A DNA stretch of 64,000 bases, from positions 186,001 through 250,000 of the forward strand of contig OZ251222.1 of assembly GCA_965240325.2 (NCBI GenBank), read 5' to 3'. The DNA comes from Rebecca billardiae RCC1528 (lineage: Eukaryota; Protista; Haptophyta). Below are positions 9,370 through 46,392 of the stretch, one piece after another. Positions within the stretch are counted from its first letter, which is position 1; every line of letters starts with the position of its first letter. The translations under genes were made by a program, and so were the position numbers. The notes under the pieces are model-generated. The model did not search any database and was not told the origin of the DNA. It worked only from the letters and a program-made list of their open reading frames with translations.

Positions 9370-10762
9370 GGGGCGCGAGTCCGGGCGGGGGCGCACGATG
9401 GCGGCGCGCCGCCATCGTGGCGCCAGCCCGCGCCCGCCGCCATCGCCGCCCGCGCCGCCGCACTCGCCGGTCCGGCTGCCGCCGGGCAGTCCGGGGCCCG
9501 GCGGCCGCGGCGCCGGCGCCAGAGGGGGCGGGGGCGGCGGGGCCGGGACGAGGGACGAGGGACGAGGGACGAGGGACGGCCGCCCGAGTCCGGGGCGCGA
9601 GTCCGGGCGGGGGCGCACGATGGCGGCGCGCCGCCATCGTGGCGCCAGCCCGCGCCCGCCGCCATCGCCGCCCGCCGCCGCACTCGCCGGTCCGGCTGCC
9701 GCCGGGCAGTCCGGGGCCCGCCGGCGGCCGCGGCGCCGGCGCCAGAGGGGGCGGGGGCGGCGGGGCCGGGACGAGGGACGAGGGACGAGGGACGAGGGAC
9801 GGCCGCCCGAGTCCGGGGCGCGAGTCCGGGCGGGGGCGCACGATGGCGGCGCGCCGCCATCGTGGCGCCAGCCCGCGCCCGCCGCCATCGCCGCCCGCCG
9901 CCGCACTCGCCGGTCCGGCTGCCGCCGGGCAGTCCGGGGCCCGGCAGCCGCGGCGCCGGCGCCAGAGGGGGCGGGGGCGGCGGGGCCGGGACGAGGGACG
10001 AGGGACGAGGGACGAGGGACGGCCGCCCGAGTCCGGGGCGCGAGTCCGGGCGGGGGCGCACGATGGCGGCGCGCCGCCATCGTGGCGCCGCAGCCCGCGC
10101 CCGCCGCCATCGCCGCCCGCCGCCGCACTCGCCGGTCCGGCTGCCGCCGGGCAGTCCGGGGCCCGGCGGCCGCGGCGCCGGCGCCAGAGGGGGCGGGGGC
10201 GGCGGGGCCGGGACGAGGGACGAGGGACGAGGGACGAGGGACGGCCGCCCGAGTCCGGGGCGCGAGTCCGGGCGGGGGCGCACGATGGCGGCGCGCCGCC
10301 ATCGTGGCGCCAGCCCGCGCCCGCCGCCATCGCCGCCCGCCGCCGCACTCGCCGGTCCGGCTGCCGCCGGGCAGTCCGGGGCCCGGCGGCCGCGGCGCCG
10401 GCGCCAGAGGGGGCGGGGGCGGCGGGGCCGGGACGAGGGACGAGGGACGAGGGACGAGGGACGGCCGCCCGAGTCCGGGGCGCGAGTCCGGGCGGGGGCG
10501 CACGATGGCGGCGCGCCGCCATCGTGGCGCCAGCCCGCGCCCGCCGCCATCGCCGCCCGCCGCCGCACTCGCCGGTCCGGCGGCCGCCGGGCAGTCCGGG
10601 GCCCGGCGGCCGCGGCGCCGGCGCCAGAGGGGGCGGGGGCGGCGGGGCCGGGACGAGGGACGAGGGACGAGGGACGAGGGACGGCCGCCCGAGTCCGGGG
10701 CGCGAGTCCGGGCGGGGGCGCACGATGGCGGCGCGCCGCCATCGTGGCGCCAGCCCGCGCCC
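9370..10762 (+). repeat. 220-bp GC-rich satellite, right block (~6.3 units)
   Basis: GCCGGTCCGG recurs at 10131, 10351 and 10571 (period 220). Units are near-identical. Confidence 0.95.
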
Positions 10763-10914
10763 GACCGCGCGGGCACGCGCCGGCCGCCCGGCCCCGCGCA
10801 TGGCTCCGCAGCGGGCCTACGGAGACGGTGAAGCCGAGCGCGATGGCGCACGGGAGGCGACGCGGCGCACGGGGCTGCACGCACGCGGCGCCGCGGCGGC
10901 GGGCCGGCCGCGGG

Positions 10915-11923
10915 CCGCGCGCACGGCGCGCGCGGTGGACAAATGGCGGCGGCGGGCGGCGGCGGCGGCAGGGCAGGCGATCATTGCAAGAACCGAATAC
11001 TGTAGCGACCCGTGACGAGCAGCTGCGCCGCGGCCGACTCACCCGTGCCGCCCGTGCGGCGCGGGCGGCACTCGCCGGCGCACGTGGTGGAAGGACAGGC
11101 GCGCGTGGTGGACAAATGGCGGCGGCGGCGGCGGCGGCGGCTCGCGGCGGCGGCGCGTGCGCAGCGACCAGGCGCACGGGGGCCGGGCCACGCGCGCGAG
11201 GCGGCGAGGCGGCCGCGCCGCGCCGCCAAGGCCGCGCTGCGCCGCGGACGCCCGTGCCAGCCGCGCGGCGTCGGGCAGCACTCATCGGGGCGGGCGCGGA
11301 CCGCGCGCGCGGCGCGCGCGGTGGACAAATGGCGGCGGCGGGCGGCGGCGGCGGCTGGGCAGGCGACCATCGCAAGGACCGCACGGCGACCAGTGACGAG
11401 CAGCTACGCTGCGGCCGACTGACCCGTGCCGCCCGCGCGGCGCGGGCGGCACTCATCGGTCGGGGGAGCCGCAGGCGGCGCGCGCGCCGCGTGCGCGCGC
11501 GGTGAAAGGACAGGCGCGCGCGGTGGACAAATGGCGGCGGCGGGCGGCGGCGGCGGCTGGTCAGGCGATCATTGCAAGGACCGAATACTGTAGCGACCCG
11601 TGACGAGCAGCTGCGCCGCGGCCGACTCACCCGTGCCGCCCGTGCGGCGCGGGCGGCACTCGCCGGCGCGCGTGGTGGAAGGACAGGCGCGCGTGGTGGA
11701 CAAATGGCGGCGGCGGCGGCGGCGGCGGCTCCAGGCGGCGGCGCGTGCGCAGCGACCAGGCGCACGGGGGCCGGGCCACGCGCGCGAGGCGGCGAGGCGG
11801 CCGCGCCGCGCCGCCACGGCCGCGCTGCGCCGCGGACGCCCGTGCCAGCCGCGCGGCGTCGGGCAGCACTCATCGGGGCGGGCGCGGACCGCGCGCGCCG
11901 CGCGCACGGTGGACAAATGGCGG
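10915..11923 (+). repeat. 588-bp-offset direct duplication built on a GTGGACAAATGGCGG motif (6 copies)
   Basis: Near-identical text at 10981/11569 and 11012/11600. Motif at ~10935, 11108, 11321, 11523, 11696 and 11909. Confidence 0.85.
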
Positions 11924-14099
11924 TAAGTGTCCGATATAAAATGGCGGATGCGCGCGCGGCATTTGGGGTAGGCACTGGACGGAAGCGCGTCAGCGCGCCC
12001 GTGCGCCGGCCCCGGAGGCATGTTGGCCGCCCGCCTCGTCGCGCAACACTTGACGCGCGGCGTGCGCGGCATGAGCGACCTGGCATCGCCGTCCCTCGCC
12101 GGCTGTCCCTTGTCCCTTGTCCCTCTGTCCCTACCTCGCCGTCCCGGGTCGGGAGTCGGCCGGGCCCCACAGCCAAGGACACCGGACATCGTCTCCCGGA
12201 TTCATTTTCTTTTTCGGCTCTTCTTTTCTTTTCTTTTCTTCCCTTTTCTTTTCTTTTCTTTTATTCTCTGCCAATACGGTTTGGCGCTTTTCGGCCAACT
12301 CAACAGAAGGATGTTCTGTTGAGTTGGCCGATCGGCGAGGGGGGGGGGTGGGCTCGACAACAGGGCCCAGGCTCTGTTGAGTTGAGCTTGGAGGCCAGCT
12401 GGACTCGACAGAAGAATGCTCTGTTGAGTCGGTCGGACGTTGGCGGCCTCTCGACAGAGCCCTGGTCTGTTGAGTTGATCGTTGGTGGACACCGGTGATG
12501 GGGGTGCCTTGGGGCGCACCGACGGCGTAAAGGCGCTGCGGGCGCTGCGGTGCGCGCGACGGCGGCGTTCCCGGTGGCGCTGCTGTTGGAAGCTACTGCG
12601 CCCCTCTCCACCTCGCGCGCTTCGCTCGTCGTCGCCGTCTCCGCACCTGCTACCGGCATGCACGCGTGCGCAGCGCCTCGGACGCCCGTTGACGGCGCGC
12701 GCCCCGGCAACCGCCCATCACCGGCGGCGGCGAGTGCTGTTGCGGTTGGATGGAATCGGATGGTCTGCTGATAGTTGGACCAACCAACCAACGCCCTCGG
12801 TGGGCTTGGGCTTTGGTGTACGGAGCGTTCGGTGGAACTTGAGCCTCGGCACATTTCCCAGCGAAGTGGCCCACCTCGACGTGGCTGGCACGCTCGTCAC
12901 GCGCTCCCGAGCGCTCGTTTCGCGGTGCCGCAGGCCTTGGGCAGACCAGTCAGACATGGCGCGACCGCATTACCGGGCCATGTGCGCACCACATCCGCGC
13001 TACGTGGCCTGCGCTCTGGACGACTGGGAGTCAATGCCCGGACCCACTGCATTCCACTGCCCCGCATGCACCCCGAGTCACCGTCAGAAGGCGTCGACGA
13101 GCGCAGAGCGGGTGCGCGGGAGTTCAACCAACTCGTGTACCTTCTTGCAAGCACCAGTGGCGAGGTCGCACGCCCAATCGTGACCAGCCGTGGAACTTGA
13201 GCCGGTCGGCAGCAAAACCACCGTGTGGCGGCCGAGATGAAGTAGCAGCGTGCAACTGCAAGGAGGAGGCGCGGTGCGTGTCCGCGGCTGGCGAGAGGCG
13301 TCCGGACCGTGATGTTCTCGGCCGCGTCCGCGCGCTTCCCGCCGCCGCAGGCCCCGTGTACGCCCGTCGTCGCCCTCGCCGCGTGGGGCGTGGGCGCCCA
13401 CCGAGCTCAAGTTCCATGGCAAGGAAGTACTGTACTGATCTACAGTTTACTATGATACAGTACGTAGTAAGATTTAACGTGCACACTTGGTTCAACAGTA
13501 CGTAGTGATCTTGACAATGTGGCCGTGCACGCGGCAACAGGGCTCAGGCGGCCCAGTTGTCGAGTGCAGGCGTGTGTGGCTTGCGATGGCAGCCAGCCGT
13601 CAGCCGGGGCGCCACGCCCACGGTTCGCTGGTGGGCTGGCCCGATGGCGTCGCAGAGCTCACGCGTACGGGGGAGGAGGGCATCGACGAGGAGACGACCA
13701 AGGGCGAGAAGCAGCCGGGGGCACGCAGCACGGGGCTCGGAGCATGCCGCCAGCACGCGTGCCTCCACACCGTCGCACGTCACCCTTGCTCGTAGCTGTG
13801 CGCTGTGCTGCACTCATCTCACCATCGCCCATGCTACGGGCGCGGCCGGGTGGTGGACATCTACCTGTCGGCGCAGCACTGGCATCGGTGGTCGCCAGAC
13901 ACTTCTCGACTTGCTCTGCGCGTGACAGCAAGGAGACGGCAGCGCCACAGCTGTGTGAGCAGATGTCAGGTGCTGCTCTGCTCAGTGAGGCTGATAGACT
14001 GAGCACGCATGGCGGGCGCTGGCATTCCCCCGCATCCATGAGCCCAACAGGTGCATAGCCGTGCCCAGGAGCGCAGGACCAACCGCCCGGTGCTGCTTC

Positions 14100-41924: not shown

Positions 41925-44900
41925 CTAGCGGCACAACACCTTGGTGCGCACGTCGTCCGGGATCGACGAGTGAATCGACGACGGCGGCGGTCCTGCGTAA
42001 TCGACGGCGCCTGTGTCGTCCGCCACCCACATTGCCAGCCCGCGCACCAACTGCTTGAGCGCGGTGTCCGCGCCTTTCCAGTGCTTCGCGCAGAATGCTA
42101 CGAGCAGCTTGGATGCATCCATCCCCTCGTCAGCCTCGGGCAGATTTCGGCTCTGTGCCCAGAGCGCGTCCACCTCGGCCCAGGCGTCGGTGAGGCCGAG
42201 CGACTTGAGCGCCCACGCGAGCAGGCCGAGCAGCGCGCATGAGCGCTGTGGCAGGTCCAGCCGCACCATCATCGGGTCCATCGGCGACGAGAGCACGAGC
42301 GTGACGAGCTCGCACAGCAGCGGCTGCATCGGGCCGAGCTCGGCGATGGGCAAGGGGCCATCGGGCACGGGTCGCCGCGTGCTGGCCAGGCGGCTCGCCG
42401 TCTCCTGGCACTGCCGCACGAGCGAGTTGATGTCCTTCTGCGCGACCGGCTTGGTCAGGCACGACGTCATGCCCACGTCGAGGCACTTCTGGTGCTCCGC
42501 GTGCAGCGCGTTGGCGGTGAGGGCGAGCACGGGCAGCTCGGCGGCCCACGGCGTGACGTTGGACTGCATCAGCCGGAGGATGCGCGACGCCTGCCGCCCG
42601 TCGAGCACGGGCATGTTCAGGTCCATCAGCACGAGGTCGAGGTACCGCCCCGCCGCGAGCTCGTGGTGCGCGAGCACGATCGCCTCGAGCCCGTTGTGCG
42701 CCTCGAGCACGACGTTGCCCTTGAGGAACATCGAGACGACGATGCGGTTCATGTCGTCGTCCTCCACGAGCAGCACGCGCAGCGGGCGCGGCTCGTTTGC
42801 GCCCGGGCTGCTCGGCGGCTCGGCGGCGGAGGCCGCGGCCGCGGCGGCCTCGGAGGCCTGCGAGATGGCGGTGCACGCGGCCTGCGCGCCGCATGACAGC
42901 GCTGCGGGCTTGGCGGTCGGGCCGCGGCCGCAGAGCCGGTTGTACAGCGGCGGCGTCTGTGGCTGCGCGTCCTCGAAGGTCTGCGCGCGCGCGGGTGCCG
43001 CACGCGCATGCGCCGGGTCACGGCGGCGAGGTCAAAGGGCTGAGCTCGCGGCGGCGAAGGCGCGCAGAGGCCGTGCGGCGGGCCGCCCGCCCCCGCCCCC
43101 ACGCACGCGCGCGCGCGCGCGAAGAGGAGAGAGCAAGGGAGAGAGCGAGAGAGAGAGGGCGAGACGCCGTGCGGTGCCAAGGGCGGGCGTTCCAAGGGCG
43201 CTCGCGCGCGCGCGCTCGCGCGCGCGGCCTCGCCCGCGCGCGCACCAGCATGTCCAGCTCGAACGTGAAGGCCGTGCCCACGCCGGGCCGGGAGTCGACG
43301 GTGAGCGTGCCGCCCATCGCGTCGACCAGCTCCTTGCACACCGTCAGCCCGATCCCCGTCGCCGTCGTCATCCCGACCGACATGGTGTTGACCGCCTCGC
43401 CCGGCACCGTGCCAAACAGTTGGAACACGTGCTCGAGCGCGCTCTTCGGGATCCCCACGCCCGTGTCGCGCACGCACATGGAGAGCGTGCGTGGCACGCA
43501 GCGGCTGCGCCGGCGCGGGGGCAGGGGCGAGCGCGGCGGGCGCGGCTCAGCGCGAGCGCGGCGCTGGGCCCGCCGCGCGCGCCGAGCGGCCGCGCGGCGG
43601 CGCGGGGGAAGGCGCGCGACGCGGCCGCGCGGCCGCGCGCGCGCGCACCGGGGTGCGTAGAGGCGCGCGCGCTCGTCCAGCGCGGGGTAGCCAGGATCCG
43701 ATGGATCGATCAGCCAGGTGCGGACGTTGATCGTGACGGAGCCGTGCTTCGTGTACTTGATGCCGTTGCTCACCAAGTTGGTCAGGATCTGCTGGATGCG
43801 CTGCCCGTCGCCCAGCACCGTCTTGGGCACGTTCTCGGAGATGTCGACGGTGAAGGAGACGTTCTGCTTGCGCTCATTGCCGTCGAGCAGCACGCGCCGG
43901 CAGTGCGACGCGACGATCGCGATCGTGTCGCGCACGGCAAACTCGGCCTCGGAGAGGACAAACTGGCCGTGCTGCACCTTCGACATGTCCAGCACGTCGC
44001 ACACGAGCATGAAGAGGTGCTCCGCCGACCTGCGCCGCGCGCCGCCGCAGCCGGGGCGACGGAGGGGGCGCGCGTGCGGAGCCGAGGCGCGGTCAGCAGT
44101 CGCTCACCGCGCTCAGCCCGCGCTCGGCTCGCGGCCGGCGCGCTCGCGCGCGGCGCGCGGCGCGCGGCGCGCTGCGGCGGCGGCCCGCCGCACCGCTCGT
44201 GCCCCGTGCATCCCGCGCGGCACCGGGCGCCGCGCCGCGTCGCGCGCACCTCAGCGCGTGCTCCAGCTGCGTCGAGAGCTCCTCGCGCGAGTACTGCGTG
44301 CCCGACTGCGCGGTCGCCAGCTGCAGCATGCCGATGAGCGCGGACAGCGGCGTGCGCATCTCGTGGCTCATGATCGCGAGGAACTTGTCCTTTGAGTCGT
44401 TGAGCGCCTCGACGTGCGCTCGGCTCGCCTCGGCGAGGAGGAAGTCGCACTCGGCGGTCATGTCCGCGCCGAGGCAGATCAGCCCGGTCACCAGGCCCGC
44501 GCCGTCGCGCGTGACCGAGGCTGTGATCAGCAGCAGCGTCGCCTTGCACGACGCCGCGCCCGCCGACGACGGCGGCGCGTGGTCGGTGCTCGACGCGACG
44601 GTGCCCTCGTCCGCCTCGTTCGGGTCGAGCTCGAACTCGAGCTGGAACGTGACCGAGCTACTGTCCGCGCGCGCCTGCCCCGCGCCTGCCGGCGCGTCGT
44701 CGAGCGAGACCAGCACCGTGCGCAGCGCCGTGTACGCCTCGCGCCGCGACTTGTCGGTCAGCTTGGGCAGATCCCAGACCTGCCGGCCCTCGGCGACCGC
44801 GGGCTCGATGTGCGAGAGCGCGGCGCACCGCCGGTTCCACACGGTCACGGTGGCGGAGGCGTCGGTGACGATGATCGGCACGCCCGACACCGCGATCATC

Positions 44901-45916
44901 GCGCGCAGGTCGTCCTGCATCATCCGCCGCTCCGCCTGCACCGTGTGGAACTGGCGGTGCAGCGCCTCCGACGCGTGCTTCACCTGCGCCTGCACGATCG
45001 ACATGGTGACAAAGGCCTTGGCGATCACGTCGCTCACCGAGTAGAGCACGAGCTCGGCGTGCGAGTCGATGAAGCCCAGCTCGGCCGCCAGCCAGATCAC
45101 GGGGAACACGTGCCACCCGACCACGACGAACGCGCCCAGCAGCACGACGTTGCGGTCCACCGAGTTCTTGTCCGCCGCGCGGAGCGCGGCGATCAGGCCG
45201 CGCGAGAGGTGGGTGAGGCAGAACTGCGAGATGGCGAGGAGCACGAGGGATGCGACGATCGGGAGGGGCAGCGTGCCGTACAGCCCCAGCTGTATGCACA
45301 TGTACGTCTGGAAGATGCGCCAGCAGTTGCGCTGCGGCGTGTCGTCCGCGAGGGTGTTGAGCAGCGTCGTCATCATCGGCATCGTGTGGTCCCAGACGAG
45401 GAAGCGCAGGAGGAGCATGCGCCGGCCCATGAAGTCGTAGACGTAGGGAGACGGCGCCACCAGCCGCGACGCGTAGGACAGAAGGCACACGAGTACGAGG
45501 CTCGTGCTCAGCCGCACCGAGCTGTTGAGGACGACGCTCGGCCACAGCGCAATCAGCACGAGGTTGACGAGCAGCAGGGTGGACATGGCCACGATCACGT
45601 GCACCACGACGTGCAGCTCGGCGTCGGCGAGCGCGTCGTAGTGGAACGCCGTCGCCGTGCCCGCGGGCGCGTACGCCTCCCCGTAGAGCACGGCGAGCGC
45701 GAGCACGTGCGACACACACACGCTCGCCGGGTGCGTGACGCGGCGATAGATCGTCGCGGACAAGTCGGTGCGCGAATAGGCGCCGGCGAGAGCGAGCATC
45801 GGGAGCACTCCCATCACGAGAGCGCTCATCCAAAGCCCGCGCACGACGACCAAGACGCCCACGCGCATCTCGTCGCCGCACGCCTCCACTGGAACGCCGC
45901 CTCCGGCGTGCACCAT
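41925..45916 (-). CDS. Histidine-kinase rhodopsin: rhodopsin-PAS-HisKA-HATPase_c-REC, 4 exons (45916-44250, 44029-43649, 43504-43246, 42980-41925), ~1120 aa
   Basis: Rhodopsin motifs LRFLVWDHTMP (TM3), WHVFPVIW (TM6) and DVIAK (TM7). Kinase motifs SHEMRTPL, NLVSNGIKYT, DTGVGI and TGIGL. Receiver motifs VEDD, LMDLNMP, LTANA and TKP. Three GT-AG introns join in frame (3363 nt). Confidence 0.93.
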
Positions 45917-46392
45917 GACGTGAGGAGGAGGAAGGGTGCCCGCCTCCGGTCGCTCACTTGGCGATTGGCGAAGCGGTGTGAATACTATATGAAATCGTGG
46001 GTGCAAGAAGTAGAAAGTTAAAAAGTGGAGGAGGAGATCTCGTGCTCACGAGATACGGTCCTGGTAAATGTACGAGCGAAACGACGGCAATGATTTAACG
46101 TCATACCAATGTTGATGCGGTTATTTGGTTATCATGAGATAATGTCGCAATACACAAGTAATTAAGGTTCAAGCAAACTCGAGGGATCCGAGTTGCGTCA
46201 AAAAGCTACCGGTTCGCAAACGTGTGCTACTCCTGCTTCATTATTTGAAGTGCCGAAGCGACACGAAATTTCCTCATAATATTATCTCCCGGGTTTTTCC
46301 GACAGAACGCTCCGTTTTCTAAGGCCCGAAAATGCTAAAAGGCCAAAAAATCAATAATAAAGCACGTTCGTGTGCGTCCGCCATTTGCCGGA

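Follow-up and report, generated by a model that had tools for sequence, protein, structure and literature searches.

How the seven-transmembrane (7TM) domain communicates with the kinase is poorly understood in histidine kinase rhodopsins (HKRs), and those described from green algae connect, to our knowledge, the rhodopsin to the kinase without a PAS domain. In the green-algal HKRs (Chlamydomonas COP5/HKR1, Ostreococcus Ot-HKR, 2c-Cyclop), the rhodopsin, HisKA, HATPase_c and receiver (REC) domains are joined in one chain that acts as a two-component kinase under the control of light (review: PMC12558739). A gene for a predicted protein of this kind was found in a 64,000 nt stretch of DNA (positions 186,001 to 250,000 of contig OZ251222.1; hereafter the window) from the haptophyte Rebecca billardiae RCC1528 (GenBank assembly GCA_965240325.2). 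It shares the rhodopsin, HisKA, HATPase_c and REC with the green-algal proteins, but differs from them in that a PAS domain lies in between, no cyclase is present, the conserved C-terminal tail is not detectably an HPt domain, and the host is a haptophyte (Pavlovales-type). No description of an HKR that includes a PAS domain, or that comes from a haptophyte, was found in the searchable literature. As set out below, it is probable that this PAS domain belongs to the subfamily of PAS-A from the phytochrome output module and relays the signal from the rhodopsin, that the gene represents a sensor swap onto a common PAS-histidine kinase (HK)-REC chassis, and that the likeness to phytochromes comes from shared ancestry in a pool of multi-PAS kinases and not from phytochrome descent. 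The features of the gene, in window coordinates, are as follows.

41925–46006, minus strand: whole gene, rhodopsin-PAS-HisKA-HATPase_c-REC-tail, predicted from open reading frames (ORFs), Pfam matches and splice sites in the sequence
45008–45526, minus strand: microbial rhodopsin core, helices B–G (PF01036, 43.2 bits; ORF residues 161–333)
44888–44992, minus strand: helical linker from the end of transmembrane helix 7 (TM7) to the PAS N-cap helix (AlphaFold2 helix at model residues 2–19)
44456–44899, minus strand: PAS domain (ORF residues 370–517), apparently a divergent phytochrome-PAS-A-like / multi-PAS-kinase member of PF00989
44543–44629, minus strand: low-complexity, disordered insert in the G–H loop (ORF residues 460–488, model residues 106–134; AlphaFold2 predicted local distance difference test score (pLDDT) ~55, no secondary structure)
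44363–44464, minus strand: C-terminal D515-M-T motif of the PAS domain and signalling helix to H548 (33 residues; HisKA PF00512, 39.7 bits)
44030–44249, minus strand: intron 1 (220 nt, GTGCGCGC...GCGCAG, 87% GC), interrupting HisKA
43246–44029, minus strand: exons 2 and 3, remaining part of DHp and HATPase_c (PF02518, 83.2 bits)
43505–43648, minus strand: intron 2 (144 nt, in frame, 92% GC), within HATPase_c
42981–43245, minus strand: intron 3 (265 nt, 80% GC)
42417–42773, minus strand: REC domain (PF00072, 59.2 bits; Asp in LMD919LNMP, T and K motifs ALTAN and LTKP)
41928–42416, minus strand: C-terminal tail (~160 residues after REC), conserved in the family, with the motif LLG.LAWAL.LLG

The gene was divided into four exons on the minus strand (46006/45916–44250, 44029–43649, 43504–43246 and 42980–41925), with the earliest in-frame ATG at 45916 and a predicted product of ~1100–1150 amino acids (aa). 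A 637-codon ORF holds the Pfam matches to Bac_rhodopsin, PAS and HisKA, and the two ORFs that follow hold HATPase_c and then the REC domain. The three introns are alike, each with GTGCGCGC at the 5' end, GCGCAG at the 3' end and a GC content of 80–92%. Orthologue clusters carry the names Diacronema lutheri and Pavlovales sp. CCMP2436, and the spliced product was found to be collinear with a D. lutheri protein of 1133 aa (P0298; 38.8% identity over 1105 aa) and with a 1060-aa member of the Pavlovales sp. CCMP2436 cluster, the exon junctions being free of gaps in both alignments. As the spliced product is collinear in this way with its Pavlovales homologues, 41925–46006 is predicted to encode an intact haptophyte rhodopsin-PAS-HK-REC gene. 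Intron 2 is free of stop codons and in frame, so that ORF finders read through it, as gene callers did in the relatives P0001 and P0010.

The Schiff-base lysine of the rhodopsin (K330; 45017–45019) lies in the motif SDVIAKAF in the last helix. The motif of helix C reads RFLVWDHTMP, in which an alignment by eye to bacteriorhodopsin places a residue other than Asp where the counter-ion usually sits. Two hydrophobic segments are found upstream of the Pfam rhodopsin match (45500–45900, minus strand). The kinase carries an N box (NLVSNGIKYT), a G1 box (DTGVGIP) and a G2 box (GIGLTVCKELVDAMGG) in HATPase_c, which together with H548 and D919 of the receiver predict a hybrid kinase that is catalytically complete by motif. 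With a microbial rhodopsin and a complete kinase in one chain, the product would be classed by sequence as an HKR (enzymerhodopsin).

The preliminary description of this DNA had drawn attention to a PAS-like peptide with a phytochrome-type pattern, and the peptide that it quoted is the exact translation of 44456–44899 on the minus strand (148 codons, stop-free). The Pfam match to PF00989 lies between those to PF01036 (Bac_rhodopsin) and PF00512 (HisKA), but its score of 22.7 bits is barely over the cut-off of 22.6 and only the N-terminal half is aligned, so that it is borderline for a single sequence. The PAS stretch was also considered at the level of structure, as had been suggested at the outset. 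An AlphaFold2 model built with a 57-sequence alignment (a 4-sequence alignment gave a pLDDT of 51 and was discarded) reached a pLDDT of 86.9, with an N-cap helix and the canonical PAS topology including a five-stranded antiparallel sheet. The model matched solved PAS domains at Z 12–13 in VIA (ARNT PAS-B, Z 13.2, root-mean-square deviation 2.3 Å, 102 residues), and 740 PDB chains reached Z≥8. The predicted structure is that of a real PAS fold, and it is confirmed that rhodopsin and kinase are separated by one genuine PAS domain.

The low-complexity insert of ~30 aa that had been noted in this domain was recovered in the model as a disordered loop of 29 residues between strands G and H. An insert in the same loop is present in the orthologue P0003 (a JGI record, presumed to be a transcript assembly). 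Its length differs among orthologues, and when the window product and these orthologues are compared, the PAS domain spans 138–167 residues from the proline of the VPI motif to the aspartate of the DxT motif. An upstream linker from TM7 had also been proposed; a helix leading into the PAS core is indeed predicted by AlphaFold2, while the continuity of this helix with TM7 is something that we infer.

A family profile (A1), built from the window PAS and three relatives that are 38–42% identical, was used to search 177,635 PDB sequences, and 11 plant phytochrome sequences were retrieved with nothing else below E=1. All 11 matches fall on PAS-A of the output module (residues about 615–740, including the preceding helix), with E values of 4.4e-6 for 8isk_A, 2e-4 for phyA and 0.04 for phyB. 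Plant phytochrome PAS-A scored 17–30 bits, whereas phytochrome PAS-B gave negative scores. The resemblance to phytochromes pointed out in the preliminary description thus exceeds chance. Features shared with plant phytochrome PAS-A (PDB 8isk, 8f5z, 7rzw) are the N-cap helix, the pattern PI..VD..G.V..WN..A.L.G and the C-terminal RD...VG...DxT strands. However, the window protein has neither PAS-B nor PAS_2-GAF-PHY, and its kinase is a bona fide hybrid HK whereas that of plant phytochromes is a degenerate HK-related domain.

The wider distribution of this type of PAS was examined with HMMER, a trimmed PAS profile being run exhaustively against 1.84 billion representative proteins (E≤0.001). This search identified 186 significant proteins, among which multi-PAS proteins of Paulinella, Phytophthora and dinoflagellates predominate, and the named matches include a 4799-aa protein of Paulinella micropora, a Phytophthora fragariae kinase, dinoflagellate proteins and two archaeal kinases. 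Among the best 150 of the 186 matches, which were examined further, a rhodopsin like that of the window is found only in Pavlovales-type relatives, and there is no eukaryotic-type phytochrome. The sole phytochrome among these 150 is of the bacterial type (P0067; PAS_2-GAF-PHY-PAS-PAS), scoring 19 bits per domain and with one close relative. Individual multi-PAS units scored 25–53 bits with the HKR PAS profile, above the ≤30 bits of plant phytochrome PAS-A.

A control profile (A3) was built from multi-PAS repeats, those of P0018 and P0014 providing four of its six rows. When A3 was run against the PDB, phyB was found with E=5e-39, with 95.4 bits for PAS-A and 38.5 bits for PAS-B, and other PAS domains scored ≤42.5 bits; plant phytochrome PAS-A is thus much closer to the multi-PAS repeats (95 bits) than to the window PAS (≤30 bits). 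An hhalign comparison of the HKR PAS with A3 gave a probability of 99.2% and E=1.5e-19. In a tree, the HKR PAS domains form a clade of their own, which a long branch separates from the 51 remaining PAS units (98/95). These comparisons indicate that a phytochrome-PAS-A-like subfamily of PAS domains exists, which includes the HKR PAS as a divergent member. Multi-PAS units outscore phytochrome PAS-A, and the nearest relatives of the HKR PAS are not phytochromes.

The P. micropora protein (P0006; EP00808 P004539, 4799 aa) contains 59 stretches of the phytochrome-PAS-A-like type detected by HMMER, and its residues 1–1200 alone match PF00989 with 651 bits. P0018 and P0014 are adjoining, overlapping gene calls on a 4.9-kb contig (L004 13-4802; JGI 3300039353) and probably derive from a single transcript for a multi-PAS kinase that a frame shift has divided. 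Their repeats are closely like plant phyB PAS-A (95 bits with A3, of which they make up four of six rows). Multi-PAS hybrid HKs have been reported in Guillardia, Emiliania and Albugo (PMC6324907). When PAS units are scored singly, the highest values come from the protist multi-PAS HKs (up to 53 bits). These share the hybrid HK output with the window protein, but they differ in having many tandem PAS domains, no rhodopsin, a separate HK clade, and a spacing of 20 instead of 33 residues from the PAS domain to the phospho-acceptor His.

The nearest relative without a rhodopsin is P0065 (a JGI record, probably from a metatranscriptome), a complete ORF for a GAF-PAS-HK-REC-HPt protein. P0065 is collinear with the window product from the helix before the PAS domain through the REC domain (29% identity over 640 residues), and its PAS domain has a loop insert, placed as in the window PAS, and on its own matches phyB PAS-A (E=2.9e-6). 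The spacing from PAS to His is likewise 33 residues, and the HK core of P0065 is sister to that of the window with support of 94/85. P0065 differs in that a diguanylate-cyclase-type GAF sensor stands in place of the rhodopsin and a recognisable HPt domain ends the protein. As the PAS-HK-REC block is common to P0065, which has no rhodopsin, the HKR gene is best read as a sensor swap, which may have gone in either direction. The HK cores of the multi-PAS kinases form a separate clade (100/99), which includes that of P0140 (Logan contig, 1072 aa). P0140 has a 7TM domain that is invisible to Pfam, with a lysine in its last helix (FGDVYLKAG), followed by PAS and HK; the spacing from this lysine to the PAS domain is 40, seven below the 47 of the window family.

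The HK-REC part itself resembles ordinary hybrid kinases by sequence comparison. A search with the HK-REC of the orthologue P0003 retrieved fragments of the family and then hybrid kinases with ~30% identity, the named ones bacterial, with HAMP, CHASE, PAS and HPt domains, and neither PHY nor PAS_2 is present in the top 120 HK-REC relatives. Against the PDB, the HK core matched generic HKs with 98–60 bits and bacteriophytochrome HKs with ~25 bits (E ~1e-4), and plant phytochromes were absent from the matches. The NCBIfam matches are kinases of the TorS/LuxQ/BarA type. The preliminary description had proposed that a rhodopsin was grafted onto a phytochrome-type PAS-HK-REC module. The placing of a new sensor on a pre-existing chassis agrees with the collinearity, sister HK core and 33-residue spacing seen in P0065, but the chassis is not of the phytochrome type, as none of those 120 relatives carries PHY or PAS_2 and the HK core is nearest to generic HKs in the PDB.

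The lengths of the segments on either side of the PAS domain are fixed. From K330 to P377, the proline of the VPI motif, there are 47 residues in the window and in three orthologues that are only ~40% identical, and 33 residues separate the aspartate of the DxT motif from the phospho-acceptor His in the window, P0001, P0002, P0003, P0010 and P0065. The corresponding spacing in the multi-PAS kinases is 20 residues. The values of 33, 23 and 20 found across kinase groups do not fit a clean heptad period, and the claim is limited to invariance within a group. As connectors of fixed length flank a PAS domain with a loop of variable length, the invariance on both sides suggests a mechanical, pass-through relay from retinal to kinase. 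Isomerisation of retinal would move TM7, and this movement could be passed through the 47-residue helix to a PAS dimer. The output of the dimer would then travel via the DxT motif and the 33-residue helix to H548 and may switch autophosphorylation and phosphotransfer to the receiver, with the insert in the G–H loop as a tolerated surface loop. It is presumed here that the relay runs through a dimer and that the PAS domain has no cofactor, and the direction in which light regulates the kinase is likewise presumed.

Several observations weigh against the proposal of a phytochrome-PAS-A-like PAS on a common chassis. In a phmmer search of the PDB with the window PAS alone, no phytochrome was found, only noise. 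The ESM Atlas neighbours of the PAS domain are generic bacterial PAS clusters, which are uninformative on subfamily, and Foldseek and VIA searches of the PDB with the good PAS model did not single out phytochromes; judged from this model, structure appears not to discriminate PAS subfamilies. In the PAS tree the long-branched HKR PAS clade has no clear sister within the subfamily, and the placement of HKR PAS, multi-PAS units and phytochrome PAS-A relative to each other was made from score triangles and not from one joint tree. In the HK tree, the backbone is weakly supported.

Other origins of the PAS domain must be considered. The PAS-HK-REC part may have been taken from a phytochrome, for example of the prasinophyte or cryptophyte type, the bilin sensor being replaced by a rhodopsin. 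In the PDB, the family profile matches nothing significantly but PAS-A of phytochromes, with the helix before it; the PAS domain of P0065 also matches phyB PAS-A, and prasinophyte phytochromes carry PAS-PAS, HK and REC (PMC4525182). However, no GAF or PHY match was detected by Pfam, the upstream domain being a microbial rhodopsin and not the bilin-binding PAS_2-GAF-PHY module, and according to Pfam a single PAS lies between TM7 and the DHp domain instead of a PAS-A/PAS-B pair. Li et al. detected no phytochrome in the transcriptomes of haptophytes (PMC4525182), and the only one among the 150 best matches examined is the bacterial-type protein with 19 bits per domain. Given also that PAS-A reaches no more than 30 bits when multi-PAS units reach 53, and that the relatives of the HK-REC part are generic kinases without PHY or PAS_2, descent from a phytochrome is considered highly improbable. 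A further explanation is that an ordinary PAS domain was inherited with a bacterial-type hybrid kinase and that the phytochrome matches are an accident of the content of the PDB. The ~30% identity of HK-REC to many bacterial hybrid kinases, the TorS/LuxQ/BarA-type NCBIfam matches, the generic bacterial Atlas clusters and the generic PAS domains matched by structure are all consistent with this. However, among the 114 hybrid kinases that are closest by HK-REC (bacterial where named), every PAS domain scored ≤6.3 bits with the HKR PAS profile and A3 reached up to 51 bits, whereas hhalign linked the HKR PAS to A3 with the E value given above. In addition, of the hundreds of PAS domains present in the PDB only those of phytochromes fell below E=1, making an inheritance of this kind very unlikely.

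The preliminary description had also raised the option that the PAS domain is a second input, with a small ligand, redox state or partner protein gating the kinase together with light, and this is compatible with the ancestry proposed here. PAS domains often bind ligands, and PAS-A and PAS-B of plant phytochromes act in protein-protein contacts; in structure, the model comes near to PAS domains that bind ligands, ARNT/HIF PAS-B and TodS PAS1 among them. However, neither a LOV cysteine nor a FixL-type haem-histidine context was seen by eye, no motif search having been run, and the exactly conserved lengths of the flanking linkers fit a pass-through relay, so that a second input seems rather unlikely. 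The preferred explanation is still that of a sensor swap involving a PAS domain from the multi-PAS-kinase pool. It has been proposed that the PAS-PAS-HK end of streptophyte phytochromes came from a non-phytochrome multi-PAS kinase (Buchberger and Lamparter, PMC4422448), and the phytochrome resemblance of the HKR PAS could be explained if both PAS domains descend from that pool.

The C-terminal tail is conserved in P0003, P0180 and P0181 and gave no Pfam match at E≤5. It was considered as a possible HPt domain, but this was ruled out by the lack of a Pfam match and by an hhalign probability of 0.06% against an HPt alignment. Elsewhere in the window, a 2-kb block (10001–12000) has a GC content of 82% and an AT skew of 0.30, far above the window mean.

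The gene family described here is absent from a census of eukaryotic HKs, in which only 3 HKs are listed for Emiliania huxleyi (PMC6324907). What is new is the assignment of the HKR PAS to a subfamily and the recognition of a chassis of the P0065 type. With a PAS domain in series between retinal and the DHp domain, and with strict linker lengths on either side, the coupling of a 7TM sensor to its kinase becomes testable. The non-phytochrome protist relatives of PAS-A bear on the proposal that the C-terminus of plant phytochromes originated from a multi-PAS kinase. More speculatively, the phytochrome-PAS-A-like PAS could possibly be a general eukaryotic adapter that connects unrelated sensors to HKs via helices of fixed register, namely bilin-binding PHY in Archaeplastida, a retinal 7TM domain in haptophytes and GAF in P0065. 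If so, the haptophyte genes would be the first case in which the output design of phytochromes has a counterpart based on retinal, and would provide a natural template for swapping photosensory inputs.

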